This document shows, in pieces, positions 2,820 to 40,200 of a DNA stretch of 64,000 nt. The notes under the pieces are model-generated. The model saw nothing but the letters and a program-made list of their open reading frames with translations. It was not told where the DNA came from and searched no databases. Location of the stretch: contig NC_043003.1 of NCBI RefSeq assembly GCF_006345805.1, positions 17,298,001 through 17,362,000 on the forward strand, given 5' to 3'. The position numbers were made by a program, and so were the translations under genes. Every line of letters begins with the position of its first letter. The stretch's first letter is position 1. This DNA is from Octopus sinensis. Its lineage: Eukaryota.

Positions 2820-4389
2820 GTAAGTTACACTGGAGAAATTACCTGGTATTGTTGTGATATTCGTCTCATAATTTTAATTTTGATAATAGTGGAATATAAG
2901 ATCGATTTCTTACCTACAAACCAATTAGGACTTACATTATAAATTTCTTTATCAATCATCATCATGAAGTTGGGCTTGCTCAGTTTTGCCTGACTTAATT
3001 ACTTTCTTTATAGCTTTTAGCATTATACATAATTAAGTATAAAAACATATAGAAGAGAACACTCCTATCACTGTTAATATCTATTATGAATTATAGAATT
3101 GAATTTTATGTTATGTAATCTTTCATCAAATAATTATGATTTTATATATATTCAAGTACTCACATATATGCATACATAACTATATGTTAGAAGAAATGAG
3201 GTACTCAGAAATCTGGATGGTTTTATATTTTCAGATATTTATTAGTATGTTACATGTTTTTATAAATCATATATCATATATTAGCGCTTTCGTCCACTCT
3301 AGTGGATTTGTCAAATTGAACTTTTGCAGGAATTTTGTCTCTTTTTATAGTATTATTGAGTGTATGTATGTATGTGTGTATGTATGTATGAATGTATCTC
3401 TCTCTGTAAACACACATACATACACAAAGTCTGATTCTTCTGAATTATTTTTGACTTTTGAGTTAATTCTTTGATATTAAAAACATTTTTTATTCTAAAT
3501 GTCTTATCGTTCATTCTTCTCAGTACTCTGGAAGAGAATCGTGCAATTTGAAACATTAGGTCTAACATAGGATATATATATATATATCATACATTCATGC
3601 TTGTATGTGTGTGTGTATGTATATGTGTGAGTGTATGCCTATCTATATGTGTGAAAATGCTTGTGTGTCTAAGGTGTTTGAGCACTCCAGCCCCTCAACC
3701 CTCCCTGGTATAGTGGGAGGTGATGGATAATTGGATGGATAAAATTATTAAATAGAATGAATATAGCACTATGAGAAAGAACTATGATATTTCGAAATGC
3801 AATTTCAAAGTAAAATTTATTTCTCTCTAAAATATTTAATCTTTTATTTTTCTAGATCCTAAAGATTCCAGTTTAGATTTTCGTTCATTACTTAAACACA
3901 GGTAAGCACAAAACTTTATTTCATTTTCCAAAACTTTTTCTTTAACGCTTTTTCTATGTCAGTTGTTCTTCAGATGGTACAATTTAAATCTTAATTTGAC
4001 GAACATTTCAGTTATATTTGAAATGAGATCGTATAAGTTTTTAAGACCAACAGGAATAGCTGTGTGGTTCAGAAGTTTACTACAGCTACATTGTTTCACA
4101 TTAAGTCCCACTGCATGTCACCTTAAGAAGCAAGTGTCTTCTGCTATAACTTCAGGTCAACTAATGCCTTGTGTTTTGTGTGTGTGTATCTTTTTATTTG
4201 TTTCAGTCATTTGACTGCGACCATGCTGGAGCACCACCTATAGTCGAACAATTCGACCCCAGTACTTATTCTTTGTAAGCTTAGTACTTATTCTATTGGT
4301 CTCTTTTGCCGAACTGCTAAGTTACGAGGACGTGAACACACCAACATCGGTTGTCAAGCGATGGTGGGGGGACAAACACAGACACACAA

Positions 4390-4450
<61 letters not shown>

Positions 4451-5599
4451 CGACGAGCTTCTTTTAGTTTCCGTCTACCAAATCCACTCACAAGGCTTTG
4501 GTCAGCTTGAGGCTATAGTTGAAGACACTTGCCCAAGGTGCCATGCAGTGGGACTGAACCCGGAACCATGTGGTTTGTAAGCAAGCAACTTACCACACAG
4601 CCACTCCTGCATATGAGGAAAGATTTTAATGTTGGATGACTTTCTTTATAGTTGACTATTTAACTGTAAAGTGGTAGCATATCTATTTTCCATTTATTTA
4701 ACTATCGAAAAGATTGCAAGACGCAACGAAAATTTTAGGAAAATAAAAATAAGAAAAAAGTGGAAATTTTACCGGTGAGTGTGTTATATTATAAGGCACA
4801 AAAAGAAAATGACTCTCCCCAGACAAAAGAATATGCTTCAACACACGAACTCATATAAAGAATCTTGCAAACTAAATCCAAAAGCGAAATTTATTTAACA
4901 GTTTTGTTTAGATAAAAATTATACAGCGTATGATCATTCTCTTGCTGTCAGTTCAAATGTTGCCATAATGAGATTATGCTTTTAGTAGAATCTAAAAATA
5001 TATCATAAACTGGCTGCAATGCATTAACCTAACTCCATTGTTTCAAAAGCCTTATTTAATCACGTTTAGTATTGCTGTTTAAATTAAGAGATTAAATTAT
5101 TACTGTTAGTTATCAACCATTTGTTTTGAACATTGAGAACTGTTATGTCGCACGTTCGGATGCCTCTACCACTCAACTCTGCTCTCCTACTACTCTGCGC
5201 TACTCTTAGTCTCGACGTCTAGACTTATCCCTCTATATCTACGTATTGGGCTAGTCTACTTCGTCGACACAACTGGAACAAAATTATCCATTAGGAAATA
5301 TATGAATGTAAGGATAAACATTTCAGTGAAATAATCCTTGCTGTTGTTTTATCATAGGGAAATGAAATGGTTTATTTCTTCATACTTCTCCCCAGTACTC
5401 TTTTACTTGTTTCAGTCATTTGACTGCGGCCATGCTGGAGCACCGCCTTTAGTCGATCAAATCGACCCCAGGACTTATTCTTAGTAAGCCTAGATTCTAT
5501 CGGTCTCTTTTGCCGAACCGCTAAGTGACGGGGACGTAAACACACCAGCATCGGTTGTCAAGCAATACTAGGGGGACAAACACACACACACAAACATAT

Positions 5600-5650
<51 letters not shown>

Positions 5651-8600
5651 TACGACAGGCTTCTTTCAGTTTTCCGTCTACCAAATCCACTCAAGGCATT
5701 GGTCGGCCCGAGGCTATAGCAGAAGACACTTGCCCAAGATGCCACGCAGTGGGACTGAACCCGGAACCATGTGGTTGGTAAGCAAGCTACTTACCACACA
5801 GCCACTCCTGCGCCTATAATATTTCAAATTTCACTCCTAGTCTATTGCAGGTGAAACACTGGTCACACCATTTTGCTCAGATTCAGAGAGCCATCTCAAG
5901 GACATGGCCACTGCCCGTCCTATTCTGACTAATTTATGAAAGAGGAACAGTAATATATCTGTAAACCCTCGTTCTTCCCCGTAACTTAGCGGTTCGGCAA
6001 AAAAGACCAATAAAATTAGTACTAGGCTTTCAAAGAATAAGTCCTGGTATCGATTTGCTCTACTAAAGGCGGTGCTCCAGCATGGCTACAGTCAAATGAG
6101 TGAAACAAGTAAAAAAGAGAGTAGCACCTGTTTGATGAGGTCTACAATACTTAAAAGTTCTCTGATTAATTAATAAACGATTTATATATTAAAGCCTATG
6201 TACGAAAGTCAAGAAAACTAAGAAATGTTTAATTTTCTTTCTCTCAATTTAACAGAGGTGATAAAAAGACAGCTGATGATGATGATGACTTGGATTGGGG
6301 CCAGTTAAAACCAGGTAAATATATGTTTTTCTGTATCGAGTATCTCAAGTCATAAAAAGGAATTTTGTATGTTTACTATATTTATTATTGACCTTGGAAT
6401 TCAGAAGAAATTTTTAATTATTCCTTAAAATAAACTATTCAATTAGAATTTAAAATAATAAAGGAAGCATTAATGAATTCTGGCAACAAAAATGAAAGAT
6501 TTCTGCATAAAATAAATTCTGAAGATTTGAAATGAACTTTGCATTAGAAGAACTGATTCCCATTTCTGAAATAACTTATTAATATTATTATTTACTTCGA
6601 TAGACGAAGATGGATAATTTCCTAAGAAATATATTAAAAAATTAGAATTATCACTTTTATTAGTTTGATATTAATCTGCTAAAGGTCAGCAACAAATATA
6701 GAATGTATCATTAGAAACTAATACAAAATAATAAACATTTTTCTCATAGGTAATATATCTCTTCACAGATATTCAATTTTACTATTTCAAACTATTATAA
6801 ATGTTCCACTACTCCTGCTTAGATATAAACCTTACCAATATATATTATCCTGTAATTTATATTTAACATATAATGCCTTTTTGATTGCCATTGAATATTT
6901 TCATTGCTATTTTCATTATCACCATTCTGAATTTTAAAAACATTTATAATAATAATTTAAATATTCTTTTTATTAGATATGTTCCTAATTTATTGAATTT
7001 ATTTTTCTTGACAGCTTTTTTTGTTTTGAAACATATCGATTCTAGATATGGTTACATTGATACTATAAACTCCATAAGGGAGCAAATTTCATGAGAAACT
7101 TTTAAAAACTGGCGCTATATTTTCATCAAAGTCTAATATGCTAAAATAATGATCATAAATCTATAAACATAATGCGCTCATGCTATTTTTCTAGATCCTG
7201 TTTTCTACTTTTCTGTATCTATATTGATCAAAATAGGCTAGAACCTCACTCATTTGAATTCGAATGTACATCATAGGTATTTGATAAGTATAAGCTGCGC
7301 TCTTTAGATGATATGCTGAAAAACTATGCTTTATCCCATCAAGCCAATTTTTAGTGTACATGCCAAATGCTCCATTTTATTTCTTTGTTTCAGACTCCGG
7401 TATGACTTGCATAGGATGCATCATTTATTATGTTCCTTGTCTGGCGAAATATTTCTTCTCAATCTGGCAATCTCTTCTTGACATTTCTAAAATATATTTG
7501 TTGTTTTGTCTTTCGCTTGTCAATGTGTTTGTTGTACAAAGCTCTTCTATCACAACACTCTCACATCTATGTTCTCTTTCTTAGTCTAGATGTTGTTATG
7601 CTTTATGTTTTTTAGACCAAACACGATAAAATCTTTGAACAAAGCTCCAATATTTTTTATTTATCATAATTAAAAATATAACAATATTGATTATGACCTT
7701 TAACTATTGAAGTTATATTAGCAATAACTATTTGATAAAATGGGATACGAAGAGTTCTATTATCACAAATTACTTCATCAGTTATCAAGAAATTTTTTAT
7801 CACTCTCATTATTTTAATTAACATAGACTATGTTCTAATTGATAACTAATTGGTAAAGTTTAATCACTAATTATGAGAGTAATCAAAAGTTCAAGCAGAA
7901 AGTAAAACAGTATGATAATAGAAACTTTTATAAAAATATTTAGTTCTACTGAAACAAAAAAAAAAGAGAAAGAAATAGTAATTAAAAACAACAAACATAT
8001 GTAAAAAGGTGTCCCAGTTACTGCATAAGTTTGAAGCTTATTATCACATTTGGTCTAAATTTTAATAGATAATGGTTTCCAGCAATGACAAATTAATGAT
8101 GATGATGATGATCATCATCATTATCATTTTAACATCAAGCTTTCCAGATATTGCATATTTAAATAATACATATTTTAAATACATACACTAGAAATTGTAA
8201 CCATACATACATATACACACATATGTGTTGTGTGTATATGTATGTATGTGTGTAAGTGTATGTATGTTTATATGTATGCTTGTATATATGAATACAAATA
8301 AACAGTTCTTACAAGTAAAAAAAATATGGATCACTTGGAACAGATTATTGAACTTTTAAATTATCTGTTGATGAGTATGCCTTCTTCTGGACAAATGTCT
8401 ATATGTATGTGTTTGTGTATGTGTGTTTGTGAATGTGGTCCTTGCTGGAAAATTTTTTTTCTTTTCTGTCCGCTTTGCTAATCTTCTGCGCGTTCGTTAT
8501 TTGTTTTGCGCTTCACTTAACTTACTGATCGCAAGCTGCATAACATTAATTATTTTGTGCGAAAGCAAAATGGTAAAGCAATCTGCTGCTGAAAGGCAAA

Positions 8601-11600
8601 GAAAGCAAAAGGGGAGGATTCAGTTTTCCTAAAACTACTGCGAACTCTATGCAACAGCAAACTGCAAAGTACAGCGCCCAGCGTGCACAAAGCGATTTAG
8701 TCATTTTTCATAATGCTAATGAAATAGAGTGGAATGCTCATTTAGTGTGCTCATTTTTCAGTAAAACGTGACAAAGCCGATGATGGAAACAATAAGGGAA
8801 ATCACCAACTTAAAAAAATTGACAAGGGTCAGACAGGTATAAAATTCACCTTGTTAGAAGTGTCACTTCCATCCCATTTATTATTATTATTATCATTATT
8901 ATTATTATTCCTATTATTATTATCTGACCCTGGTTTTATTCCCTGCTTTAGTTCCTGTCACCTTATTATGCAAGACTTCCATGTTTAAACATAAGTTAGT
9001 TATTTTCATATTCTATTTTGTAATAAAATTGTATTCATGTAATATAAACTTTTATCAAAATATTTTATGAATGCTGCACTAAAAATGACAAAATATATTA
9101 ATAGCGGATTTTACTAAAACAGGAAATTTAATTTTCAGTTATCTCACAATATATCTAACTACAAACATAACAAACCAAAATAAACAAAATAAACCAATAA
9201 TAAACCACAAAATAAACCAATATTTCTAATTAAACATTGATGCATACCAAATCCATGTACTTTAATAATTTTAACTTATGTATTCAATACATTGCACTCA
9301 ATATTTTAAATACTGTTAAATAACCAGCATTAACTATTAAACTATTAAACTGACTTTTATTGACCTGAACTATCTTAACAAGAAGGACTGGTCACACAAT
9401 TTATCAATTAAGGAAATTAAATATTCTTTAATATTTTTATGCATTTCTTACAATAAATATGCATCTTATGATACCATAGTTTGAAAATATATTGAAAAGA
9501 ACCTTAAAATAATCTATTATTACTTTGTCAGTTGTTAGAAAGTTAAATTGCAATTAAGCAGTCTCAAACATAGGTTGAAATAACCAAGACATTTAGTTTA
9601 AGGCATAGTTTATCAATGAATTACCACAAATCTTACATGAGACTGTGAAACATTAAAATATCTATTTCATAATTTAAATATAACTATAAATAAATAAATA
9701 AATAAAAAGATAAATAAATAAATGTATATATAAATTTACAGATGATCACAATTTCCAAATAAAAATACAGTAAATCATTTATCTAAACAATTAAAATATA
9801 TTATTCTTCAATAAACTACTTGAAATATTTCTCTGTTGAACCATATGTTCTTCAAGGAATGTCAACCACCAAAATTAGATAACTATCCTGAAAATGATAA
9901 CATCCTTTCCAATCTGTAGTTCCCGTGTAGTCCAAATTCCTTTGAATACCTTCAAAGTAGAAGCTCTACTGTGGAAATATGAAACATATAATGATACTCT
10001 TCCTTATAAATAGAATTTGAAACATAAAGAAAATCAATTTTGTAATCAAAACTAAATATCTTTATATCATATTATCAAGAGTAAAAAATAAGAAGTAAAT
10101 AATATTAAAAAACATATTTCTGCACCCAAGAAATGTGTTGTCTATCTTAATAATTACGTGAACATAATTTCTTTTGTAAAACAAATATGAATTTTATAGG
10201 AAATCCTAATAATTTCTTATGTCATGTAAAACTTGTATTCATAAAAACTGAGTTTACTCTTACCTCGTGGATAAGTTATAGGAATGGAAACATTTATATA
10301 TAGGCTTAGTGAATACAATGGGAGAACATTTAAATTGTTGCAACTTTTGAATGATATTGACATTTTCTAATATTGAATGCTCTCCCTGCATTTCTTGACC
10401 TTCTTCCTTTTACAGTTGACAATAAAAGTCAATAAATCAGCTGAAATAAAGTTCTTTCTCTGAAGTCCTGATCATATGTGTTTAGATAAACTAAGATATA
10501 TTAATATTATTCTTCAAAATAATAACAATTTAAATTTTACTGTAAAGAATATGCTTTACTATTACTTTAAGTGAACTTTTCTCAAATATTTTCATATAAT
10601 GTAACAAAACAGAATCTGTCTATCTATCTATCTATCTATCCGCTCAGTCGAAGTTGACTCTCAGTTATTCGATGGATCAGTATCCTCCAGCCAGTTCTAT
10701 CCTGGGTCGCTTCTATCAGATTGGCTATGTCCATTCCCGTGTCACTCTTGATGGTGTCAGGCCAGCGGGTTCTTGTTCGGCCTCTTCCTCTCTTGCCACT
10801 GACCCTTCCGAGCATGATGTCCTTCTCCAGGGATTTTCTATGCATAATATAACCAGAATAATGCAACTTAAATATTGAGATCATTGTTAAGATCCTCTTC
10901 TGGTCTACATAATTCTTGATATTTCAATAATTAATAGTAGTCCAATTTTTAAATCAGATCAGCTGGTTTCAACTCTAGATATACATTTACTTTTTAAGTT
11001 TGACAACTTGGTTATGATACATTTTCTTTTTCATGTGTGTGTATGCAACTATTTAATTAGCTTGGAAATAATGAATACCGATAAATATATACTGACTTAA
11101 AATTTTCCACGTTTTTGTAATTAAAATTTAATGATATTATTCATCTCAACTTCACCTTGATAATATTTATCTAAAACACTTAAATGAAACTAAAATTTAC
11201 TTCTAGGTATGAGCCAAGCATATTATACAGCCTGCTTGTACATCTCATACAGAATTAGATGAAATATAATTTTGCTATTCTTTAAGGGGAAAATTCTTGC
11301 AGGTGTTAATTCAATACAGTTAATGATATTATTTATGTTTCAAATAACACTTAACTTAAAATATACACACACACACATTTATATTATATTATTATTAAAA
11401 ATTGTTTCATATTTCCACAGTAATGGTAGAGATAATTGATATTTTAAAAAATTTTATGTGTGTTTCTGCCTTTGCTTTTTACTTCCTTATTTAATTTTTT
11501 TTTTATCCTTGAAGAGTATTTATATAAAATACAAATTATAATTGCCAAACTTTGAATTTTTTCTATTGTCAATTATATCTATGGATATAAGAGTAAATTA

Positions 11601-14411
11601 TACTACCAGTATTATACAATTAATTTGTATTATTAATGTAAACTAATAAGTAAAAGAAAAATATAATTTAAATTATTAAAATTGGCCAACTCCTTCACCA
11701 AGTAAATTATTCCAAAATATAGTTTTAGAATTATTTGAATATGCTAAAAATAATACAATTCTGGTTAAAATTCAAGAACCAACATCAAAAATAGAAATAA
11801 ATCATTCAAATAAATTTCTAATAACTTGGTATATGTTTGTGGAAGTTTTGTTCCATCCGGCTTGGTATTTCATGGTTCAGGGTTCAAATCTCTGAAGAGT
11901 GAACTTTGTCTGTGATACTTTTGGCTATTAATTCACTTAATCTCTGACAAAATTGGCCAAGTATCAAATTCGCGGAAATCATTATATTATTATAAATAAT
12001 TTTCTGTAGGTAAATATTTACCATCATTCATATGGGTTTTTGTTTTCATAAGTAGATAATCTAGTATTATCTGTTGTTGCCTATTTTACTATGGCAATAT
12101 ATAATAGTACAGTGAGGTTAGAAAAATCATTAAATATTTTTCTAATATTTTTGTGTTGTTATTTACTTCTTTTTCCAGAAAATCCAAGAAGTAAAAGTTT
12201 TTACTAAATGTATTATATTTCTTTTCTCTTTTTTTCCGCTGTTTTATTTTACAAGATTTCATTTCCTTTTTTAAATTTTTATAATCCATTTATTTTTTTT
12301 TCCTACTAATAATCAATTACCAATTTATTTATACTTTTCTTTTTAATGAGTAAAAGCTATTTAAATATACACATACATGGCGGTGCCCCAGCATGGCCAC
12401 AGCTCATGAGCTGAAACTAGAATCAATCAATCATACTCAAATTAAGAATGCACATGTGGAACACACAGTGACTGCTACAATAATCATAGTAATCATGGAC
12501 AACTATAATAATTGCTTGCATTATTAATTATTAATACAAATCCAGAATAATACAAAGAAGTCAGTAAATGATAATGGCGATTTGAATGCAAGAAATATAT
12601 TTGGAAAAGTAGCAAACAAAAGAAAATTCTCTGATTTAAATAATCTGTAAATGTACTGTTACATGGGTAACAGTTATCTAAATTACACTGCATGATAAAT
12701 GTTTAATTTTTTGCTTTTAACACTAAAAATATTCATATTTTTTTGAATCTGGCTTATAAAATATTTTCTGTCATAGTTAAATTGTCTTTTTTTTAAATAA
12801 TGTTTTAAATTATGTATAATTGACAAATCTAAGAATATTTCAAATCACAATAAAAACAAACTGATATCAGCATTTCAGCATAAAGATGAGAAAAGAGCAT
12901 GATTTATGTAGTTGATCAGTCTTCAATCAAACTTCACTACAATGGCAATGCGTATGTTCATGAAAAACATTTATTCTACATTTATTCAATAAGAAAATAT
13001 CTTTCACTATTTTGCCTTATGAAGAATATCAGATTTTCACATTTTCTCATTTATTCACTGCACCTTTGGAAATTGTAGTTGATCATAAGCCTTAAAAGTG
13101 TTATATTATGTATATATTCATTCTATATATTTTGGATATCAAATTTTATACTTTCATTAATATCTAGTCGTAAGGCAGCATTGTTTTTTTAGTAGCAAAC
13201 ATTTTAACTTTGCCAATATGTGTTTTGGTTGCAGTACCAATTAAATATCTTTTGGATAAGGTAAATACACGTAAAAAGTAAGTATAAAAATGTCTCCCAA
13301 TGAGAAAAGTATTAGATATGAAAAAATACGGCATAAACTGTAACTCTTGAATATGGGACATGGCCGTTCGCAATGATCGTTTCTGTAACACTTTGCTCCA
13401 ATATCTGTCTTTCCTATGTTCCAGTTGACAAATCTGGTAGGAGATTGTCTCAGATTGAGCTGACACGTATGAGTTTGAAGAAAACTGAGAAGGCTGGAAG
13501 TGATAGTGAAGATGAAAAGGTAAGGTTTTGGATCTATGATAATTGCTATTTCATCATTCATTTTTTTTTTTTAGAAATATTGCATGAATATTCTTTGTTA
13601 ATTTAAATATTTTTTTATTTAATCAAGATTGAAGAACACATATAAATTTAATTGCTAAATATAATTGCTAAATTTAATACGTTTCTTTTCTTTTCATACA
13701 GCCCTCCTATACTTTTGGTGATTCAGTTATAGAATATATTTGATATAATTTTAAGTTGTAGAAATGTTCAAACGTGTTTGTGTATAGACACAAATAGACA
13801 CAGTAAACAAATGTGTACCACAAATAAATTTCTGATTTTAATATATTACCATGCATTTATAAATAAGAAAAGGAAAATAAATATATTAAAACATATTACT
13901 TTATTTGTGGAAAATACACACATGCACAAGTATTCACTTTGTTGAGTTTTTCAGCATTTCTGTTTAGACGTTTTAGTTATTTAGAGACCCTATCTTTCAA
14001 GAATTCTCAATTACCTTTATTTTATCATTGAAGTTATTTATTTGCTAATGTCATATTCTGATATGACATCATCACACACACACACACATCATGTATCACA
14101 TAAGATATTAAAAACTTTTTTTAATTAATAGAGTCAACTAAACAACTCCAGTATAAAACTTAATTTGATTATTATAAATTTAAAGTTCATAGAACCTTTG
14201 ATGCACCAAATAATTCTTGAATTATTCTATTTGTGTTTTCTGTTCCTGTTGTTCTAATCAAAAATTTTGAAAAGCTCAACTCAAATTTTAGGGAAAATTA
14301 TTTCATATATTTAAGCAACATTAATTAGATGAATAATTGCTTTTAATATATACTATTAAGTGCTGCGTGCGCGAGCGACTGCGGTGCTGCATACAGATAT
14401 ATCAAGCTTAC

Positions 14412-14466
<55 letters not shown>

Positions 14467-15209
14467 GTGTATGTCTTATCCTATATAAAAGTGTGTAATA
14501 TAAAATTATATACATGTTAGCAAAGGATAATATATTCATGCCTATTTTTGAAAATAGTGATAAGAAGAAAATATATTGTCTTCCTCAAGAAATATATACA
14601 CAAAACATTACTTACAAATAAGTTGTATAATGATGCACTAAATAAGTCTATTTCACCTTCATCTTTCTATCTTTTCTGAAACCCTTTTTAATATATACAC
14701 ATACACCTATATATTCATTTTAATGTTATATTATTATTCTAAATTATCTATAATCAGCACTTAGGAATTCTATGTTTATTATCAAGTGTTTGATCTCTGA
14801 TTAGACTATATTAAATTTAGATTCTATCCATTTTTTCATATTTCACTGCATTTTCCAATAAACTAGAGTTCTGAAGGTAATTTCATCAACTATACACATA
14901 TCTTGTTTGATAGCTTGCAGGTAAAGCAATAAAATTATCTCCAAACTTTGATAAAATACTGCTGATGAATTATACTTTGAATATAATGATATATCCTTGT
15001 CTTCTTATCTTCATTTTACATTTGTGAAGAGCTCATGTCTTCAGGTATCAACTTTTTAAAATGTTGCTTGTTAATAAGCAACTATAAAGTTGTTCAAAGT
15101 ATATATTTGCCTTTATGATAAATACTTCTCTAAATGTACATTTGCTTCCAAAAGTTGTTTTAAAAAGAAAAGTAAATAAAAAATTTCATGTTTAGTAAAT
15201 TTAAAACTA

Positions 15210-15246
<37 letters not shown>

Positions 15247-16550
15247 GTTATTATTATTATTATTAGTGACTTACACTCACATAAAAAAAATGAAGCACCA
15301 TCAACGGAAAGGATTTTAGATTTTCAGAAGTGAGACAGGAAGAAGAAAATATTTAGCTTTTAATATTTTATACAATTTTTGCTTTTTCTCCCGAAGCTTT
15401 GTTGTTTATGAAGCATTAAATGTCTTCAACTTATATACCTCAAACACAACGTTCAAAAAGCAGGTTTCTGCGTATCAACCTTTGCAGGTACAATTTATGG
15501 TCCCTCTATTGTTGCTTACAGTAGCAGTGGTAATATATATGTTGCTAAAAATGGCTATGTTGACTTGAAATAATAACCTTAGCTGCAATCTATGAATGGT
15601 AGTCATAGAATTCTAATCTATTACTTAATGCTATGTAAATTTCTTATTATATTCTATTAATTTAATACTTACCTTTCTTGCTCTTATCTAAGTTCTTAGG
15701 ATACTTCTACCTGCACATTTCACTTTAAGTATTGTACCTGAAATAAATTTTAAAATTCACTATGCTTATTATTACTAATATTTTAGTCATTAATTTCAAC
15801 TCATAATTTGAACAATTTCATCACTGATAATGGAAAAGCAATTAAATTTGTAATAAATTAACATTTTTAGTCATCACTCATTATTAATTACCAAACAGAA
15901 TCCATCCTTTAAAGACAATAACTGTTGTCTTCCACACAGTTTTTCTTTTATAAATAATTATTATTTTAGCATAAAATATGATAAGCAAACTCTTTACCAT
16001 ATTTGCTTTATATGGCTGTTTGGTAGAACATTTCCCCAATAGCTTCATCATATTCTTTCACCTACACAACTCTATATATACTGGTATTCTCCAATGATCT
16101 GCTGTCTTTCTTCTGATAAGTTATCTTCTCTCCATCAACATGAACTTAAATTACTTTCATGTAACTGACATAACTTTCTATTTTTCTATATACTTTAAAT
16201 TCAATTAATTGTTCCTTACTTGCATATCTAGATCAGTAATCGACATCAGCAACAAAACAAAATGACATATCTACATACACATATATAGAACTATATATAG
16301 AAAATTAAGATATCCTAAAACTACTGTAGAAATTAACTGTTATTAGTTAAAAACTGACAAAATTAGTATTTATTGCTTTTTACACTGCACATTTCTTCAT
16401 TGCATATTTAGTGTTTAAATTTTATACTTAGGCTTGAGTGCTTCTCCATTTTCAAGTGTTTCCAGAACAGAAACAATAAATACAAAAACATTTTCCTCCA
16501 GTTCGATTTAAAAATTAGTTCTGTTAAAATAATCATCCACTTTTAAAATG

Positions 16551-16583
<33 letters not shown>

Positions 16584-16716
16584 ATATTAATAAATATAAG
16601 GGTAGCAAAAAATTCTAGAAAAAATTCACCACTTCCAGCAGTCCAGCGAGAAAGAAAAGATAGTCAAAGACTATATAATATACTTTCAAAAATATATATA
16701 TTTTTCAATGTATATT

Positions 16717-16776
<60 letters not shown>

Positions 16777-17004
16777 GTATATATATATTGTTATCCTGTT
16801 GTGCCAACAAAGAACTTATGAAATATTTTGCCAGGACTGATAATCCCTCACTGAAACTGAGTATTAACATTTTGGTTAATAACTGAAGAAGAATTAGGGT
16901 CCTTCTGTGTCTTCTACATATACATTTTTTAGTATTTAATGTATTTTTTCATTTATTGAGTAATTGAATGGCATGCATCCAGATTTTTGTTAACAGTAAG
17001 TTGA

Positions 17005-17044
<40 letters not shown>

Positions 17045-19143: not shown

Positions 19144-19178
<35 letters not shown>

Positions 19179-20188
19179 TATAAATAGAAAAAGGTGGAAA
19201 ACTAAGTCCATAATTCTTAGATATTAGACACACACACACACAAACATACATATGCATTCAATATTGAAAATTGGGTTTAAATCCCAAATGGTTTTGGGTG
19301 TTTACTAATATGTAGCATTTAATATTCATAGACCATTAATTATAGTCCTCCATGTGTATGAATTATCTAAATTTCTTCCTATTACCTTAATGAAGAAACG
19401 CAAGCATTTAAAACTCATTCACAGCTTTTATAATGATAAGTGCATTTTTTTCCTCTCAAAGGATTACACCGACGATGAGGATGAGGCTGGCGACAGGAAA
19501 AAGGCATGTTTCACTCAAGTTTCTGGCAGAAACTTCCCTAGTCTGTGGACTCTTGCTCGCGCGTGTTGTGTGTCTGTATTTAGAGTAGTTCACTAACTTA
19601 ATATTTATTGATTTTGAATTTGTTTGTTGGGATCATTAAGCCTATGGTTGATACGTTGTTGTTTTAATACACAACATTCAGGAAAAGGAAACAAACATTA
19701 AAAAAAAAAGAAAAAAATCTGAAAATCTTTTATGAAGAACGGAAATATTAGCTCTTAGATTAGTATTCATGTAGAAAATTATTTTCGTTTCTATAATATT
19801 CACAAGAATACTAATTTTTCAAATGACAGAAAATAATATCTCTCAGGCAGGATTTTCTGATTTTTTTTCTTTTATCATTAATATATACTTCCTGAAATGT
19901 TACACTGAAATGTTATTTTTGAGAAGTTGCAAGTTTAACTTTAAGTTTATAATTCAACACTATCTTCCAGAATAGGTGAGTACTTGCCTTGATCTATTTG
20001 ATATATCATTTCTTTCCTTTTACCATTAATTCCTCTGAATTGAGTGATAGACTATTTCATCAGAATTATGTACATCATATTTCATTGCTCATGTATTTTA
20101 AGATTGATGAAAATTTTATTGAAGCACATTATCAATATCATGTACATAATACTTATTATTTATATTAGAATGTAAGGAAATAGTCAAG

Positions 20189-20226
<38 letters not shown>

Positions 20227-23200: not shown

Positions 23201-26200
23201 AATCAGAATCATTTCATTTCTTTTTATGCAGAAATGATGTGCCAAGTTCTAGGGCTGGAGAAATATTAAAATCATTCGCTAAATGTAGTTATTATTTTAC
23301 AAATAAACATATAGGAAGTAGTTTCTTAAATACAGAAAAAACTAGCAGTTTATAAACTGTTTTTTTAATTCAGGACTAGTTTCAAACTGAATGCTGGAAA
23401 TATTTCAGTGTGTATCTGACGACCTACTGAGTTTCTGTATGACTTAATACTCAAACTGTAATACTCAAGAATAAGATGTTTATGTGCATCAGCAACATAG
23501 ATAAATTATTGCTGAAAATTCAAAGAGAACTTTGGATTTGTTTTGCTGCATCTACCATGAAAATCAGAAAATTAAATAGAAAAATATATTTTTAGCTTTT
23601 AATAATTAATGAAATTAAATTAGATTAGCAATTAAAACTTATGTATATCTAGTGCTTTTTTAAACTCAAATATACAATTAACATAAATATGTGGTAATAA
23701 AAAAAATAATTAATATCTTTTAATCAGCAAAAATGTACTTTTCTAATATTTTTTCATTCTTTCCTTTTCCATTTTGAAAAAAATCCATTTTTATAAGTTG
23801 AAAAATTATCCTTCACCTTGCTTTTACATTTTTTTCAACATTGCTCAAGTTTGTTACTAGGTTATGTGTAAGTATCAGTAAATATTTGACAGCACCAAAC
23901 CAACTTCTGCAGTGAATGTGGTTGAAACTTCCTCTTATCAATTGTGTCTTGAGATGCCATCATGCATGTGTGAGTTTATGTTTGCCCTGCTCTGTCTACT
24001 ACAGAAAGATTCATCCAGCCGACGACAGTCAGTTGAGAGCACTGACTTACCCATCATGAAAGTGTCGGCCGAAAAACTTGAGGCTCTTGAAAACCAGCGT
24101 CGCAATTCTCGACAGATGCGTCGAGCATCTTTGGCAGATGTGATTCCTGATTGGCCAACATTACAACATAGAATTAAAGAAAAGGAGGTACACACTATGT
24201 TCCCAACAATAATTCCTATCTCTTTATCTATCTATCTATTTAATTATATTTCGATATACTAAATAAAGTTGATAATAGAAAACTGAAGATATGAAAGTAC
24301 TATATGCATATGTGAATATATATAAACTTATATATATATACCTATACTTAAATATTTTTATAGTATTTATCTTTAATGTATAGATATATATATATATTAA
24401 ATAAGTATTAACAAAGTAACTGAATAATAATGTGCATGAAATTAAGTTACATAACAGAATGCACATATATTAGTCTAAATATCCTTGCATAAGAGTCACA
24501 GAGTCTCTATGCTCAAAAAGAATTCTAATTATAAAATAAGAGCCAAATGTCATTGTACATTTTAAAATTTATTAAGTCATACATCCTTTAGACTTAAATT
24601 AATTGCTTTATGTTTTAACATGAAAGCAAAGTATTTTGTAATCCATCCATACAAATTTAATCTTAATCAAGAAAAGTTTAATATCAAATCATTAGCTAAA
24701 CGTATTTATTATTTTACAAATAAACATAGAGGAAGTAGTTTCTTAAATACAGAAAAAACTAGCAGTTTATAAACTGTTTTTTTAATTCAGGAATAGTTTC
24801 AAACTGAATGCTGGGAATATTTCAGTGTGTATCTGACGACCTATTGAGTTTCTGAGCAATGAAAGCGACAGTAACTTTTGAATTGATCCTTATACTCAAT
24901 TTTCAACTTTCTTAATCTCTTTCTTGTCTTAGTGGAAATCTTTTACAATTGTCAATGATTTATACAAGCAAATTTTGCTGATTATTGTTGCAGGTAATTT
25001 TATAGATTTTATTTTAATAAGTAAATTTACCAAAAATATATGCATTCTAAAGCAATAAATTAATGCTGATAATTAAATTACTGTTTATTGGCCCCTTCAT
25101 TAGTGTCTTAGTTTATATGCTACAACTTTAACTTAATAAAATTAAAGAGAATAAATAGATAATTGCAGTTAATTTCATATATTAGTATCTGATAAAAAGT
25201 AAGCAAATTCGTTGAAACTACAAGAATTAGGATGCTTAAAATTTATATGGTACCAGAACACACTAATATAATGTTTGAATGTATTTTCATGATTTTAAAA
25301 GTTTATATGTTTAATGGTATCCTTCAGTCTTGTGAGGACTTATTACTCTGGATATTTAAAATGAAAATGTCTAAGTATGACAGTATGGAAAACCAGTTAC
25401 TTATGCAGTGAGCAACTGAAGAGAAAAGATAGCCATAATAGGGAAATGAACTTGAGATAACTTCTCTTATATTAGGTTAAAGAATATTGGACTTCATAGA
25501 GAAGATAACCTTAAATACTGACAAAAAGTATTTGGTGACTCTGGTCCATCCAATGTACAACACCATGAAAGAACAAAATAACAAATAACAAATAAATGGA
25601 ACATGAAAAAATTAATTAATTCTTATTATCTTAAATATCATGTCTCTTTTATGTTCATTCAGGTTATAAATATTTAAGTTGAAAAATTAAATCTGCTTGT
25701 TAATCATTGGCATTATTTAAATTTTCCATTAAGAGTTAACCCAACTTTGAATATACCCAGATGGCTTTGTTTGTGGTGGTGTGGTGTTTTTTCATCTATA
25801 TATTCTTGTTTACTTTCTTCCTTAGTGATTGCTGAAAACCCAATCAAACTTCACAACACATTATTTCCCTCAATAACAACCAGAGAAAAAATATCACATA
25901 TTAATTTACAGACATAAAACTCAACAGAAAACTTTATGCAAAATATTTTATAAAACTTCTTAGATTTTAGTATTTATATGGTATTTAGCAAGAATATAAG
26001 ATATTTTAATCATTTTATAACAACATTTTTTTATGAAATACAATATTTTATGTGTTTTGATTAATTTTGATTATCAAAAGTTTAATCGTATTTATTATAA
26101 GCTGGTATTTGGAACATAACTTGATAAGTTACATTAAAATAGACACTTTGTATAAGATAACAATGGCAGTCTTGGGCATGTTGACATCAAAAGCAATATC

Positions 26201-27873: not shown

Positions 27874-27912
<39 letters not shown>

Positions 27913-28921: not shown

Positions 28922-28962
<41 letters not shown>

Positions 28963-28988
28963 CACACAGATACACACATATTTATGTA

Positions 28989-29033
<45 letters not shown>

Positions 29034-30747
29034 AAAATTCAAAAGTATTTAGACTAAATTTTTACGAAATGCTAAACGAAAAATTTCAATACATATGATA
29101 AAACCATGTTAGTTCTTTAACTGTGAAGAAATATTCTAATAAGGTGCAAATAAATATGTATCTAAATAATAAAGCTAAGTTTTCAATAATAATTTTAATA
29201 AAAACAGAATGATTTCTATATATTTAAGAATCATCATTATATTTGAGAATGTTATTTTGCATATATTCACATACATTTCACTCCTTCTCTTGTTTACTGT
29301 TTTCATATCTTCAACATTATTTGTTTAATTCTGTCGATATATTGTATTTATGGTGTAATTTCACTGGATTTTCTCTTTGTATCATTGAATAATAAAAGAA
29401 AAATGTTCTCATGGGAACAGTATACAACAATCAGGGATGTCTTTGATCTCCATCTAATGTAATTGCGTTTTTAAACAAACACAGCACTTTCATAATAGAT
29501 GCTACCTCTGGACGAATACCACTGTAAATTTACTTTTCAATGGTATATTTACATTAATTATGATGCATAAATGGCTATTATATTGATCACCGTGACCGAC
29601 CAGGCTATCAGATGTTGCTACTCATTGCTTGTCACAATAAACTTCACATTGTTTTGGCCTTCAAATGATGCCACCCTGCTGGCTAAGCTAGCAGGCCAAC
29701 AGGAGAAAGAGTGAGAGAAAGTTGTGGCGAAAGAGTACAGCAGGGATCGCCACCACCCACTGCCAGAGCCCTGTGAAGCTTTTAGGTATTTTCGCTCAAT
29801 AAACACTCACAACGCCCGGTCTGGGATTCGAAACCGCGATCATACAACCGTGAGTCTGCTGCCCTAACCACTGGGCCATTGCACCTCCACGGCTATTATA
29901 TATATATTGGAAAATTATGTTAAGAGTAAAACTATTCCTTGGAATACTTGACCAGTTTACATGCTAATTCAATAAGTAGATCATTTACTTGATTGACCAG
30001 ATGGACACTCTTAGTTCGTTCTTGGCAAGAGTGTCCATCAAATACATATATAGATAGGTGCAGGAGTGGCTGTGTGGTAAGTAGCTTGCTAACCAACCAC
30101 ATGGTTCCGGGTTCAGTCCCACTGCGTGGCATCTTGGGCAAGTGTCTTCTGCTATAGCCCCGGGCTGACCAATGCCTTGTGAGTGGATTTGGTAGACGGA
30201 AACTGAAAGAAGCCTGTCGTATATATGTATATGTATGTGTCTGTGTTTGTCCCCCTAGCATTGCTTGACAACCGATGCTGGTGTGTTTGCGTCCCCATCA
30301 CTTAGCGGTTCGGCAAAAGAGACCGATAGAATAAGTACTGGGCTTACAAAAAATAAGTCCTGGGGTCGATTTGCTCGACTGAAGGCGGTGCTCCAGCATG
30401 ACCACAGTCAAATGACTGAAACAAGTAAAAGAGAGTAAAAGAGTAATACATGCATACATACATAGATACATACATATATGCATGTATTCATATAATCTTT
30501 ATAGAATTGTAGTAGTCAAATTTTGTATCATTCTCTTTGAATGAAAATATTAAATAGAATAAGTATATCTAATTAGTCATTTGAATAAAAAATTTGGAAA
30601 TTCAGAAATAAATACTTTCTATACATCCAGTAATTGGAGACAATGCTAAAACTAATATTCTCAAGAATACTAATTACAATATGAAAAATACATTGTTTTT
30701 TTTTATATTCATTAGTATACATGTCAATAGAAGCCATTACAATCAGC

Positions 30748-30783
<36 letters not shown>

Positions 30784-31887
30784 TGTAGGAGTGGCTGTGT
30801 GATAAGTAGCTTGCTTACAAACCACATGGTTCTGGGTTCAGTCCCACTGCATGGCACCTTAGGCAAGTGTCTTCTACTATAGCCTTGGGCCGACCAAAGC
30901 CTTGTGAGTGGATTTGGTAGACGAAAACTGAAAGAAACCCGTTGTATATATGTGTGTGTATATGTTTGTGTGTCTGTGTTTGTCCTCCCAACATTGCTTG
31001 ACAACCGATGGTGGTGTGTTTATGTCCCCATAACTTAGCAGTTCGGCAAAAGAGACCGATAGAATAAGTACTAGGCTTACAAAGAATAAGTCCTAAGGTC
31101 GATTTGCTTGACTAAAGGCAGTGCTCCAGCATGGCCGCAGTCAAATGACTGAAACAAGTAAAAGAATATATATATAGAGTAGATTACATTGACCACAATA
31201 TTTTTACATGTTCTAGTGAGATAGATGGAGACTCTTATAATTAAATGAAAGTCACTTTGAATTATTTCAAAACATGAAATCTGAGATGAGCTAATATCTA
31301 CAGATTTTTTTTTTCTCTCAAATCTATCTATTTGACACATTCTTATGTAACATTTGCTCCATTTGAATTAGTTTATTTTAATTACCATTTAAAAAATCCT
31401 ATAAGACTTCAAGAATCTTGTATAATTTTTGCAATTCCTTTAGGTATAGCCATGGCAGTGTGTTTAAGGATCTTGCTTTGCAACCACATGGTTTTGGGTT
31501 CAGTTCCACTGAAGTTGTTGTGTCTGTGTTTGTTCCCCAATCCTCTGACAGAAACAGAAAAGATTATGTGTAAAGAGAACACTTAATGGAGCAATGAAGA
31601 GAGAGATTTTATTAGCCCTCTATTCCTGAAATACAGGAATCTAGCAAAAATTTAAAACAAAAGAAAATCCAGTGAAAACATAATACATTTTACAAAGAAA
31701 GAAAAAAATGTAAAGATACATTTAACGTACAAAACATATTTTTAGTAATTAGAAAATATATTTTCAACTTGTATTGTTGTACTCAAAAGTTAATTATAAC
31801 TTTCTTTTTTTATCTATTATGTTTGTTTAATACGCACATGCGCGCACATAGACTCTCATGTACATATATATATACATATATACATAC

Positions 31888-31933
<46 letters not shown>

Positions 31934-34170: not shown

Positions 34171-34230
<60 letters not shown>

Positions 34231-37200
34231 TACACACATATATAAACTTACATATAAGATATGATATCAGAAAAACAATATTTATTCTATTACAAAAAAT
34301 CTAGATTTTAAAAACAATATTAGCTTTTAATTATGGAAATATGAAAGGCCAAACATTGACTGTGTAAAATCCATGTTCTTGTTTTGTTGTCTATTTGTAA
34401 GATGGTGTGTTATTGACATTTGATTATGTAAAGTCTCAAATAATATTCTAGTAGTATTAAAGAAGAATATCTTGTTTTTGAATGGTAACATGAAATAAAA
34501 GACAAATAGAAAACCAAATTTCCTTAAGAATGTCTATTTGTTTAGATGTTATTATTATAGGCCTGTGCCAATAAGTATCACAATTATTATTATTATTATT
34601 ATTATCATCATCATCATAAGTAGTGAGAACATCATTTTGGTGAGGATGATAAAAATGATAATGATTATTCATAGTACTCATACATTCTTGAATGTATGTA
34701 ATGAATTTTAAAATAATATTGTATATGTAATCATATATACATTTTAATTATTTCCAGTGGTTTCTAGATTTAATATCAAATAATGAAATTATTATTGGCT
34801 GATATTATTTTGCAGCTTTCCCAGTGCCTGTTGATAGGTTACACATTGCCTGAGTCTTGTACAAAGTCTGTAATGCATGTATTTATTATTGATTTCAAAT
34901 ATATTTTGCATGTTTTCACATATTTTTTTACAACTTTTAACTAGTATTATTGCTGATGATAGTCCCATGAAGATTGGTAATTATTTTAAATGAAGTTAAG
35001 ATTATTATTATTATAATTATTATTTCTCTTTTTACAAAATGTGATATCTTTCCATTTATTATATATATATATATGTCAAATATTTCTACCAAATAATGAA
35101 TGAGTTTTCTTTTATAAGTATGTTTAAGTATGATGAATATCTTAAACTTTTTTCCCTTTCATATTAATTACAGAATTTTTTATTAGATCTTATATCTGTA
35201 TACAATTGTAACTAAATTAAGAATTGTTTTCAGTTCATTTATATTTATTTAAATGAAAAGCATATCTGAAAAATATTGCAAAAGCATAAATGAAAAGAAG
35301 ACATAATCAAATTCATTATAGTATATCCCATTAACTAATGAAATGTTTCATCTATATGATTGATAATTATTTAGCTATATCTTTATTTTTATAAATGAAG
35401 ATAAAGGAATTATTTTTTTGTAGTATTAGTTTTTGAGAAATGTTTATAGCACAAAATATGTTTTGAAGATATATAATAATATGAATAAAGCTTTTTATGT
35501 TAATGAACTGAAATACTAACACAATAGTAAGTTCTTGAAATAGATTAGTGTGCATAGAAATTTAAGGACTAAATGAAATGCAAAATGAAAAATGGCCTTA
35601 AAGATGTACCATAACCTATGCTTATCAATGAAAGATATTTTCTTAATTGTTCATTTTTTACACAAGAAATTTCCTCTAAAATTTATAAAGTTATACATCA
35701 ATAAACAGTCATACAGATCAATATTCCAAAAAACAATTAACAACCTTAATTAGCAAAACTTTATAAAAAAAAGTGTATCATATTTAAATTTTATTTATAA
35801 GTTTTATATATAAGTTTTATTTAAAATATTTTAGATATTTGCTTTGGAATATATCTAGAATACTTATGTAGCATATTTATATTTTTAACTGCTTAATTCT
35901 TAGACTCATACTAGAGATTCTATGCAGTAGCACAATCTATTCATTGTAAAACCATTGTAATATCTTTTTAAACTAAAGATTTTTGCCCGCTATCAACATT
36001 TTTTTACTCATCATACTCAATCATACGGTAAACTCGAAGATAATACTATTTGGAGACCATTCACATGATTTGATTTTAAATATAATTTATTTTTACATTA
36101 TTTTTATGTATTTTAGAAATTAACTAATTTCTTTAACTGTTTTCTTACTTTCTTTACATATATGTCCATTATAATCATTTTCTTATGAATTAAACTTTAA
36201 TTATTCTATTTCACAAAATGCTTAATGTTTACAATTGTACTTCAACGTAAATCTGAATTTGATCAGTAACTTTATTTTTTTTGTGTGTAAAGAATTTTCT
36301 TTCATAATTGTCAATTCCACTTTGTGAACGTTTTTAGAATACTCTCATAGAAATCTGTTGAACACAGATTTTTCTGAATGTTTAAAAGAATTTGTTATTT
36401 GAATTCACTTTTTAAAATATTTAAATAGCATAAAATATATGTATTTCAATATTAGCGATATTTAGTCATATCAAAACTTTTGAAAAATTATTAGAGTTCA
36501 TTTTAAATGCAATTTTGAAAGCCTCTTTCAGAAACCTTCCACACTTTTAAGTCACTTTATTCTAGAATCACCAACATGTACTCTTTATATTATGCTTTTT
36601 ATTTCATGATTGGTTTTAAGTTTCAAATTATGTTATATATACTTAGTGATATATTTTAAATGTAAAATTTTATGTTGTTTAAATAATAACTTGACTATAA
36701 ATAATTCTGCAATTAAACAAAAATATTAAATGAATAAGATAAAGCTTTAAAAATAGATATCAACCTCTTTCTTCTCAAAGGATTATCAGAAATTTATTTC
36801 TTGCATTACAAAATAAAAGTAAATAGTAATTTAGTATTTCATTATTGGAAATATTTTTGCCTGTCATCCCTCTGAGGTTGATAAAATAAATTATCAGTCA
36901 ATTATTGGGCAGGGTGGGGGCTGGATCATTGTAATCGACTGTACCCCTCTTCTGAAAATTACTGGCAATGTGCCTAAATCAGAAAACATTAGGAATTTCA
37001 ACTGTGTTTCATGGTCTGCTACCACAATAGCTCCTTTATAGGATCTGGTTAGCTCAAGACATCATCAGGAGGAACCACATCTGGTTTCGGCCCCTACTCC
37101 TCTACCGTTTTGATGTGGTGGGGCCCCCGCTTCCAGAGGTGTCTTCAGCTCTGGTGTTGGATGCATGTCTTCTTTCTTCTGTTCCCTGGCCTCTTCGATG

Positions 37201-40200
37201 TAGATAATTCACTGCATCATTTGCTTTCAGCCAGTCATTTGATTTTAATTTATCTCAACCATTAGAAGATAAATTGTCAAAGGTTTCTCTACTCCAATAT
37301 GCTCAAAGAGGTTGAATAGTATGTGTTATTACTAGCAGTTATGTTTTAACATGTCATTATTAAGCACATATTACCAGATCACAATATCAAGTGCAAAATC
37401 CCTATTTAAGATATCTAAATGAGATTATTAATGATAGGAAGTGAAGATATAATATTAATATATATGATACAGTATTTAAATTTATATCATAAAATCTTAT
37501 CGACAGTTTACATAATTTAAAATGGATTTTTAATGTTTAATGTCTATTATTTCTAATGAAAAAAAATTATAGAAAGAAAAGCACACTTTTTTTGTATATA
37601 CTTTTTAAATTTATAAATACATAAATGAGAATGTTTATTCAAATCCTGCTTAAGCTCTAAATTAACCATGTCAGACTGAGCAACTGCTACTTTAATCTAG
37701 TAGTACTTAGATATCTATATATTAACTAACATTGATATGTTATAAGAAATCATTCCTTTGTTTATACTAACAATATTTGGTATTTTACTTATTTGTATTA
37801 TGCCACATATCATGTAATGAATCCAGAAGATTTTTAACATCAAAATTGTAAGAAAAAATATCTCTGATACAAATTTTGTTAAATTCGAATTATCAAGAGT
37901 AATTTTACTTTGGTATTATATAGATAACAACTCTTTCATTGACATAATAAAATTGGAATAAATCCATTTATTCAAAAATTTGTAAATCAATATACACACT
38001 TAATCACGTTGTCACATGTATTTGTGTATGCATGTTTTTGTGTGTACATAGAGTCCTAAAAGTATAAGCTGATCGTCATAGCTACAATATAATTTTTGCT
38101 CATTTTTCCCTTCTTCTGGAATCATGATTATAAAAGCATGTTGGTATAGTGTCAAAGTAAAGCTACATCAATGCAAACAGTATGAAACACATACATAGTG
38201 TAATCTTTGAAAGTCATTATTAGTTACACTAATAATTATTTTGATGTGATTTCTAAAATTCTAATTATAAAAAACATTGATTAATTTTCAACAAAAATTC
38301 TGTTTTAGGCTCCTGAAAATTTCCTCAAAGAATTGGAAGATATCAAGGTTATGGAAGGTACTGAAAAAGTACAATTCGCTACAACATTTTGCCGTCCAGG
38401 AGCTAAAGTTCAATGGTTCAAAAATAAGATGGACATTTTCCATGGTGGGAAATATCACATTGAGAATGAAGGTGATGATTATACCCTCACAATTCTTAAT
38501 GTTAAACTAGAAGATGGTGGAAAATATATTTGTCAAGTCAACAACAGTACAACATCAGGATGGCTATACGTTGAAGGTAAGTATAGCAATAATTCAAAAC
38601 CTTTCACTTTTTCTTTAATTACTCTTTTACTTGTTTCAATCATTTGACTGTGGCCATGCTTGAGCACCACCATTAGTCTAACAAATCAACCCCAGGACTT
38701 ATTCTTTGTAAGCCTAGTACTTATTCTATCGGTCTCTTTCTATCGGTTGTCAAGCAATGTTGGGGAGAGAAACACAGACACACAAACACACACACACAGC
38801 CATTCAAGAATTTGGACCTGGAGGTCTCCATTTCCAGCGACTTTGAGGGCCACCTCCCAGGTTTGGTAAATTAAGTACCAGTAGCATACTGGGGTCGATC
38901 TAATCAACTGGGCCCCTCCTCAAAAATTTTAGGCCTTGTGCCTAGAGTAGAAAAGAATATTTCTGATCTGCTTTTAAAACGGAGTTTTATTGCTTAAGAC
39001 TCATAAATCATGCATATGTATTTTATAATATTTTATCACATGCCCTGATCTCAGTAACACCATTTGATATATTGTAGCCAAGGAACCTGAATATCATTTC
39101 ACCAAAAAATTGCCACAACATCATGAGGTAGTGAGGAAGAAGGATACACAACTTGAATGCTTTGTTTCTGATCCAAGAGCAAAGGTTAAATGGTTCAGAA
39201 TGGGTGAGCCAATTGAGGTAAAAACATTTTTTCAGTTTTCTAAATTTTATATACAATACAAAAGACTGATTACGTTCTATTTAATATTTACAAGTATTAT
39301 AGTTTTTCATTGAATTTAGGCAATATAATTAATGAAAGAAAACTGTTATATGCAATGGAAGCAGTATTAGAACAAGATATCCACCTAAGCACTGAAATGT
39401 TTAGCTTAAATGGTAAAGCACTTTGACCAGAAATTGAAGGGATGTGAGTTCGATTCACATGGCTGGTTGCTGACAGATTTTTCTGCTCTGTAAGGATTTT
39501 ATCCTATATATGCTGTTCTATCAATACTTAAGCATTGAAAAATATATCTTTCTACTTGTAAAATATTTTATTTTAATATTTCCTTCAATATTCGTTATTA
39601 ATCTTTAGTGTCATAGCATATATCTCTCAGATATATCTCATTGTATTTGATCAATACCTATAATCTTTTTGTTAAACTCATCTATCCAGCTTATTTGTTT
39701 AGAGCTAAATGGCATTACACTAGTGATAGTTAATGATTTGCTTATGATATTCCAGTTTGAACCAGGAAAATATGAGATGCAGAGGCGAGAAAACAGGTGC
39801 ATATTAAAGATTAAAAATGCTGGTCCAGGGGACGAAGCTGAATATTCTTGTGTCTGTGGAAAAGCATCCACTTACTGTGATTTATATGTTGAAGGTAAAT
39901 AAATATAAATTAAATATATTTTGTTTTCCTTTAGAGCAAAATGGCCAAACCTGTCTTTTTCTTTGTTAGATTATTTATCACCTAGCAATTTTTTGCAACT
40001 AAATTTACTCCCATTCTGTAATTTGTGTTTATGCTCATACTGTCACAAAATAACCAGCGAAGATCCAAAATCAACTAATTTCTATCCCTGGGGGTAAATT
40101 TACTCCAGTCTGGGAGTCCTTGACTTGCATGGCCGATACTTTATATAAGAATTTCCAGGAAATTGTATCAATGGATTGGAAAAACTCTTGTCTCCTCTCC

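Follow-up and report, generated by a model that had tools for sequence, protein, structure and literature searches.

The twitchin-type phospho-linker of Octopus sinensis: an ancient small-exon core within long introns, and a few candidate optional exons

Why should the short linker between two immunoglobulin (Ig) domains of a giant muscle protein occupy some 35 kb of an octopus genome? The question is raised by a stretch of 64,000 nucleotides from Octopus sinensis (RefSeq assembly GCF_006345805.1, contig NC_043003.1, positions 17,298,001 to 17,362,000 of the forward strand; hereafter the window), across which a single plus-strand gene extends through AT-rich DNA with a guanine-cytosine (GC) content of 22-40%. 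An earlier note on this DNA had proposed that the linker is a combinatorial module of cassette exons and microexons at work in cephalopod muscles. The reading preferred here, to which we give a probability of about 0.6, is that the region is a twitchin phospho-linker with an ancient small-exon core and lineage-specific intron expansion, and that isoforms, if there are any, would come from whole frame-neutral cassettes.

The exon chain of the gene in the window is given below, where a slash in a sequence marks an exon boundary.

2574-2819, plus strand: Ig-domain exon (w1 of the earlier note), 246 nt, ending in phase 1, donor AAG/gtaagt
3856-3901, plus strand: 46-nt exon with the DFRxxL motif, phase 1 to 2
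6256-6314, plus strand: 59-nt exon, phase 2 to 1
13425-13519, plus strand: 95-nt exon with the first RRxS site, phase 1 to 0
19462-19503, plus strand: probable 42-nt acidic exon, possibly optional, phase 0 to 0, GC donor AAG/gcatgt
24005-24187, plus strand: 183-nt exon with RRQS, RRNS and RRAS and the motif IPDWPTLQ (D1-type), phase 0 to 0
38309-62781, plus strand: 21 downstream Ig/Fn3 exons (w7 of the earlier note onward), the first at 38309-38576

Each of the 46-, 59-, 95- and 183-nt exons has AG/GT boundaries, and all four match molluscan homologues in translated searches (tblastn). Together with the flanking Ig exon and the 21 downstream exons they splice into a single stop-free frame, whose first exon, 2574-2819, matches I-set as well as residues 754-817 of the Sinanodonta protein P0003 (tblastn); the 3' end of the window falls inside the Ig/Fn3 region of the gene. 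The count of five small exons in about 35 kb given in the earlier note is thus supported by homology for four of them, whereas the fifth, of 42 nt, needs a GC donor and has no homologue. Its statement that the next 21 exons fit into about 24.5 kb was accurate, since the downstream block measures 24,473 nt and holds exactly 21 exons, compared with five small exons in 35.5 kb of linker. Median intron length is 5.2 kb in the linker (n = 6; range 1.0-14.1 kb) and 0.9 kb downstream (n = 20; Mann-Whitney p = 0.0004), and coding density, computed by hand from the exon lengths, is 1.2% versus 14%.

Splice-site models were trained on the 26 exons of the gene, and codon log-odds served as the coding score. 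The acceptor position matrix, built on 26 sites, was too noisy and was replaced with a pooled pyrimidine model, while a dynamic-programming gene finder over-called transposon open reading frames (ORFs), so its output was curated by hand. Comparison with related species covers 20895-24339 and 12729-14088 (contigs L001 and L002, respectively 183-nt and 95-nt exon regions), or 4.8 kb of the 35 kb. In L002 the 95-nt exon is 97% identical with its protein unchanged, and conservation of the intron around it is not clearly raised.

On domain content the gene is predicted to encode a twitchin-like Ig/Fn3 giant muscle protein. Its spliced translation contains eight I-set and five fn3 stretches in alternation (Pfam), and among solved structures it matches titin, MyBP-C and twitchin best. 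The linker segment itself has no match to any Pfam family and is flanked by Ig domains on both sides; the same Ig-linker-Ig arrangement is present in Sinanodonta, Elysia and a third mollusc, represented by a contig from ENA ERZ1756085 (L006). A motif scan placed DFRSLL at 3876, DWG at 6293 and the sites RRLS, RRQS, RRNS and RRAS within 13439-24119. The earlier recognition of a twitchin phospho-linker, with a DFRxxL motif and sites for protein kinase A (PKA), was therefore sound. The closest full homologue is the Sinanodonta woodiana protein P0003, with 64% identity across the linker; the Elysia marginata model P0001 and the spliced fragment P0002 align with the linker as well, and most of the 36 database matches fall on the 183-nt exon.

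An alignment of four molluscan sequences (A1) shows invariant FRxLLKHR, DWGxLKP, KLEALE and IPDWPTL together with four R[RK]xS sites, and the DFRSLL and four RRxS columns are invariant or nearly so. The L006 counterpart of the actin-binding-type motif reads DYRNLL, so that the pattern may be written D[FY]RxLLKHR, or D[FY]R[SN]LL across the four sequences. By position and motifs, the region is the putative orthologue of the molluscan twitchin D1-type phospho-linker. In Mytilus twitchin, PKA phosphorylates site D1 (Ser-1075), located between Ig7 and Ig8, and this modification lowers actin binding (PMC12040844). Furthermore, a D1-containing Mytilus isoform has been reported to be specific to catch muscle (Kusaka 2008, as cited in PMC6059360), and the PEVK region of insect projectin is alternatively spliced (PMC3835035). 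The precedents of splicing in projectin and mussel twitchin to which the earlier note appealed were thus fairly represented. Searches of protein databases turned up neither a cephalopod twitchin nor any isoform derived from transcripts of this species or a close one.

The exon architecture is shared well beyond cephalopods. At the Elysia locus (L005) the linker exons measure 46, 59, 95 and 189 nt, and in L006 they measure 46, 59, 89 and 180 nt, with the same boundaries as here in both cases; counterparts of the DFRxxL exon, identical in length at 46 nt, lie at L005:7288-7333 and L006:5561-5606. The 46- and 59-nt sizes recur in both Elysia and L006 and the 95-nt size in Elysia, so the small-exon architecture is ancestral and not cephalopod-specific. 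Intron sizes are more variable. Elysia has linker introns of 2.5-3.6 kb versus 0.5-1.0 kb downstream, and the L006 linker introns are 103, 181, 2787, 1305 and 856 nt long. The brevity of the first two shows that the linker can do without long introns. Of the linker introns, the one that separates the DWG exon from the RRxS exon ranks first in length in Elysia and L006, and second here. We propose that the core set of exons (46, 59, 95 and about 183 nt) is ancient and fixed, with boundaries that would predate the gastropod-cephalopod split, and that the 35 kb would mainly represent lineage-specific growth of the introns around it.

Reading phase restricts which exons could be optional. From the phase-1 end of the Ig exon the path passes through phases 2, 1 and 0 at the ends of the 46-, 59- and 95-nt exons and stays at 0 across the 42- and 183-nt exons. 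These last two are each frame-neutral singly, as are two candidates of 75 and 111 nt described below, and the 46- and 59-nt exons are frame-neutral jointly (105 nt). The 95-nt exon, running from phase 1 to 0, cannot be skipped alone and is obligatory. Since none of the 46-, 59- and 95-nt exons is frame-neutral singly, free combinatorial use of the five exons is impossible.

Within these limits, the 183-nt exon looks like a regulated cassette, to judge from its phase (0 to 0), its donor and its flanks. The donor, GAG/gtacac, scores 2.0 bits and is the weakest among the 26 exons, and no other acceptor scores as low in the pooled model. Identity to L001 is 98% in the exon against an intron background of about 84%, and it stays high in the adjacent intron on both sides, at 88-93% over the 150 nt downstream and as follows upstream.

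23805-24004, plus strand: conserved 200 nt of intron immediately before the 183-nt exon, 92-98% identical to L001, versus 84% distally

The combination of weak splice sites with conserved flanking intron occurs at this exon only. RNA folding near it gave no structure signal (z = -1.05). By analogy, these features would fit the catch-specific, D1-containing isoform reported in Mytilus. Whole-exon alternative splicing is therefore plausible as a prediction from these features, foremost for the 183-nt exon and then for the 42-nt exon.

The 42-nt segment is probably an exon. Its boundaries read tttttttcctctcaaag/GAT...AAG/gcatgt, and at 18.0 its codon log-odds exceeds that of every other stop-free 14-codon window in the linker introns (about 26,000 on the two strands together). 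Relative to intronic sites, its donor context stands at the 99.5th percentile and its acceptor at the 90th; it is present as a single copy in the window, with a GC content of 52% versus 28% upstream. The reading frame is open also without it. No homologue was found by tblastn, by protein searches or in alignment A1, in which it appears as a lineage-specific insertion, and the window's ORF spanning it is not on record in databases. A version with a canonical GT donor was considered and rejected, there being no plausible AG...GT segment of 42 nt. A near-perfect 19-nt palindrome, AAGTTTCTGGCAGAAACTT, lies at 19517-19535, 14 nt downstream of the GC donor; RNA folding around the exon, including the palindrome region, was no better than that of shuffled sequence (z = +0.39).

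The earlier note had gone further, envisaging a combinatorial cassette and microexon system in which many exons of 5-75 nt tune spacing and charge between the DFRxxL motif and the PKA sites. Candidates were defined as frame-preserving, stop-free AG...GT segments in the phase that each intron requires, with splice scores within the range of real sites, and were counted against five control sets drawn from the wrong reading phases and the opposite strand. Well-formed extra candidates do exist, as had been stated; they are equally frequent in the controls, with 19 in the correct phase versus 10-19 at 3-75 nt, and 8 versus 7-14 at 3-27 nt. The linker introns hold no excess of microexon candidates over controls. 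Three candidates fall within the 4.8 kb alignable to related contigs, and all three diverge like neutral intron, so the expectation that candidate exons would be conserved failed there. The smallest supported exon is 42 nt, and none was verified at 30 nt or below.

What speaks for such a microexon system is the very low coding density, the length of the introns and the additional coding-like candidates of 75 and 111 nt in phase; moreover, inclusion of the strongly acidic 42-nt exon or of the basic 75-nt candidate would shift the charge of the linker. The chance-level counts, the neutral divergence of the covered candidates and a small-exon pattern ancestral to molluscs all stand against it, as do reading phases that allow at most 3-4 independent units and bar free combination. 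We consider the microexon system very improbable. The cassette idea fares better when it is confined to whole exons, for which the 183- and 42-nt exons and two longer candidates are plausible; its microexon part is unsupported.

8762-8836, plus strand: candidate 75-nt cassette exon, basic, phase 1 to 1, tcatttttcag/...CAG/gtataa
17138-17248, plus strand: 111-nt segment, a weak exon candidate in phase 0 to 0 whose coding log-odds of 13.3 exceeds that of all controls

A coding score of at least 13 is reached at three in-phase linker loci only, those of 42, 75 and 111 nt, all in the correct phase. The control maxima are 7.4 in the five linker sets and 10.7 in six sets from downstream introns (one of them in the correct phase). 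The 75-nt candidate has a coding log-odds of 16.6, within the top 0.3% of windows, and the windows that outscore it are all GC-rich, repeat- or transposon-like loci or belong to the 42-nt exon region. It is single-copy in the window, its splice scores are just moderate, and a search for homologues of its peptide found none. In alignment A1, Sinanodonta carries 16 extra residues (GSKEAQQLSPALRKTS) in the intron position of this candidate, and the lineage-specific insertions of Sinanodonta fall exactly on exon junctions. The 111-nt candidate has an acceptor without a pyrimidine tract and a peptide unlike the linker. There may be one or two further cassette exons.

A simpler account would be purely constitutive: every transcript would include all five small exons, the introns would have grown neutrally around the short exons of a disordered linker, and no alternative splicing would take place. 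Several observations are consistent with this. Exon sizes and boundaries are fixed across molluscs, the 46-, 59- and 95-nt exons are not singly skippable, further candidates occur at the chance rate, and the first two L006 introns are only about 100-180 nt; similarly, the bivalve-like spliced transcript fragment P0002 is a plain chain of the DFR, DWG, RRxS and D1 exons. Such an account sits less well with the 183-nt exon, which has the weakest splice sites in the gene together with conserved flanks, with the D1-specific isoform reported in Mytilus, and with the three in-phase coding-like candidates, which surpass all 11 control sets. Repeat content also counts against neutral expansion, as in-window repeat makes up 13% of the linker introns versus 37% of the downstream introns; with less repeat in the linker than downstream, plain transposon accumulation is not shown. 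On balance we regard a wholly constitutive linker as possible and rather unlikely.

Two further linker-like candidate exons in other molluscs lie in the intron before the D1 exon, the position held by the 42-nt exon in the octopus. In Elysia marginata (contig BMAT01000034.1), an unannotated in-phase segment at L005:14155-14235, with a GC content of 52% versus about 33%, encodes (ILQ)KETSSRRTSSIQLEMREALEQSVR, including KETSSRRTSS...LEMREALEQ, and the part of the window that it matches best is the beginning of the D1 exon. It resembles an incomplete copy of the D1 exon that has an RRxS site of its own. In L006, a 168-nt in-phase ORF at L006:9431-9598 (CPSVGPSRKGSLISDDQPYYPSSRKDLAQRRWSNASTESQGDPFHVVLKHRKNVDK) contains RKGS, RRWS and an FxxxLKHR motif, and is in frame only with a GC donor, AAG/gcaggt, like the 42-nt exon here. 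Apart from the match of the Elysia segment to the D1 start, the candidate peptides (42, 75 and 111 nt, the Sinanodonta insert, Elysia and L006) show no similarity to one another or to other loci.

These segments permit a bolder suggestion, which is offered tentatively and is doubtful at present. The intron before the D1 exon might be an ancient optional-exon position common to molluscs, using a rare AAG/GCAxGT donor (19462-19503; L006:9431-9598), with fast-evolving content that would add acidic charge, RRxS sites or a second DFRxxL-like motif according to lineage. If, in addition, the 183-nt exon were skipped and the basic 75-nt exon included, such a position could yield muscle-type-specific tethers.

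It may also be asked whether the long introns are retained for regulatory elements (enhancers, an internal promoter or silencers) and not for extra exons. One sign of this is a conserved block about 1.75 kb upstream of the 183-nt exon, which has no plus-strand ORF and may be a regulatory element.

22145-22270, no strand assigned: non-coding block, conserved with about 3 differences from L001 in its roughly 125 nt (background 84%)

The conserved flanks of the 183-nt exon, the low in-window repeat content of the 7.1-kb and 14.1-kb introns, and a DWG-RRxS intron that is long in all three loci are in keeping with a regulatory role. Just 4.8 kb of the 35 kb can be compared, however, no RNA structure was significant, and Rfam and transfer RNA (tRNA) scans of the whole window gave no matches. 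Regulatory elements would in any case be compatible with an expanded small-exon linker and do not exclude it. As the main reason for the long introns, we think this explanation very improbable.

Several other elements were noted in and around the introns. A dispersed repeat of about 420 bp, resembling a short interspersed nuclear element, occurs in both orientations, often followed by (TA/CA)n microsatellites, and gives rise to recurrent pseudo-ORFs; no tRNA was detected within it.

4187-4611, 5396-5822, 30042-30494, 30767-31187, 44995-45411, 45576-45991 and others, both orientations: copies of the repeat of about 420 bp

By eye, the minus-strand ORFs 10636-10884 and 48240-48797 are like C-terminal tails of retrotransposon reverse transcriptases, and the first is probably a single-copy transposon remnant on the same visual judgement; the Elysia locus has a similar reverse-transcriptase-like tail near 15.2-15.6 kb. 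A GC-rich island at 36850-37300 reaches 51% GC in an intron of 20-25% GC and contains short broken ORFs on both strands. Its top coding-like score sits on the minus strand, and the island is probably a decayed transposon fragment. Both other molluscan loci have a polyubiquitin gene on the strand opposite to twitchin, a few kb beyond the second post-linker Ig exon (L005:24113-30345, minus strand; L006:13442-15709, minus strand). This gene is either nested in a twitchin intron or a marker of a conserved neighbourhood, and has no obvious counterpart in the window.

Some points weigh against the preferred reading of an ancient core with whole-exon cassettes. For the 42-nt exon and for the candidates of 75 and 111 nt no homologue was found, and all three lie outside the related-species contigs, and the candidate exons of the three species lack sequence similarity to each other. 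The codon score favours GC-rich and acidic sequence, so decayed transposon fragments can fool it. Conservation of the flanks of the 183-nt exon comes from one related contig, and could be due to local variation in mutation rate or to a regulatory element unrelated to splicing. The label 'D1' is assigned by position and motifs and is to be taken as putative. In addition, constitutive inclusion of all five exons stays compatible with a data set that consists of sequence.

If the preferred reading is correct, the isoforms, if any, would comprise an optional 183-nt PKA-site exon, the 42-nt acidic exon, possibly the 75-nt basic exon, and joint skipping of the 46- and 59-nt exons. Such splicing, and the physiology attached to it, we infer from what was observed of exon structure, phases, conservation and control statistics. 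By extension from the Mytilus literature, the unphosphorylated linker would help to tether thick to thin filaments, and phosphorylation by PKA in response to cyclic AMP would free the tether.

Comparison with known systems places the octopus linker most closely beside the D1 linker of Mytilus galloprovincialis twitchin (Funabara 2003; Kusaka 2008), which is likewise a unique N-terminal inter-Ig segment with RRxS and DFRxxL motifs. The octopus differs in taxon, in its much longer introns and in its extra 42-nt acidic exon, which is not seen in the gastropod and bivalve sequences compared. The PEVK/NTCS-1 region of insect projectin (Ig8-Ig9) is similar in being a unique region at an equivalent position with many small exons, of which 2-21 are alternatively spliced according to species (PMC3835035). 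However, the spliced projectin exons encode PEVK repeats and the linker here is not PEVK-like. In the molluscan orthologues P0003 and L006 a PEVK-like region does occur upstream of the linker, before the preceding Ig domain, unlike the spliced region of projectin. The octopus linker may instead correspond to NTCS-1, a conserved segment beside the PEVK region, a lead that comes from the projectin study (PMC3835035).

Similarities to two other systems are partial. Smooth-muscle myosin light-chain kinase carries three tandem DFRXXL motifs, and the same D-F-R-x-x-L is present here in one copy (DFRSLL), for which actin binding is putative. Bilaterian microexon programmes, in which exons of 3-27 nt lie within long conserved introns, share small exons, long introns and a disordered segment with this locus; unlike in those programmes, the smallest exon here is 42 nt, candidates are not in excess, and the covered ones are not conserved.

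In bivalve muscle, the N-terminal linker of twitchin is the switch for 'catch', a holding state of low energy cost. Catch-like holding has also been proposed for the skin papillae of cephalopods (PMC6059360). The gene structure described here belongs to an orthologue of a known system. The only new leads it offers are a handful of possible optional exons, together with the finding that the 46- and 59-nt exon lengths recur unchanged in two other molluscs and the 95-nt length in one of them. If isoforms with and without the PKA-site exon or the charge inserts do exist, they would provide a molecular handle on which muscles hold tension cheaply.

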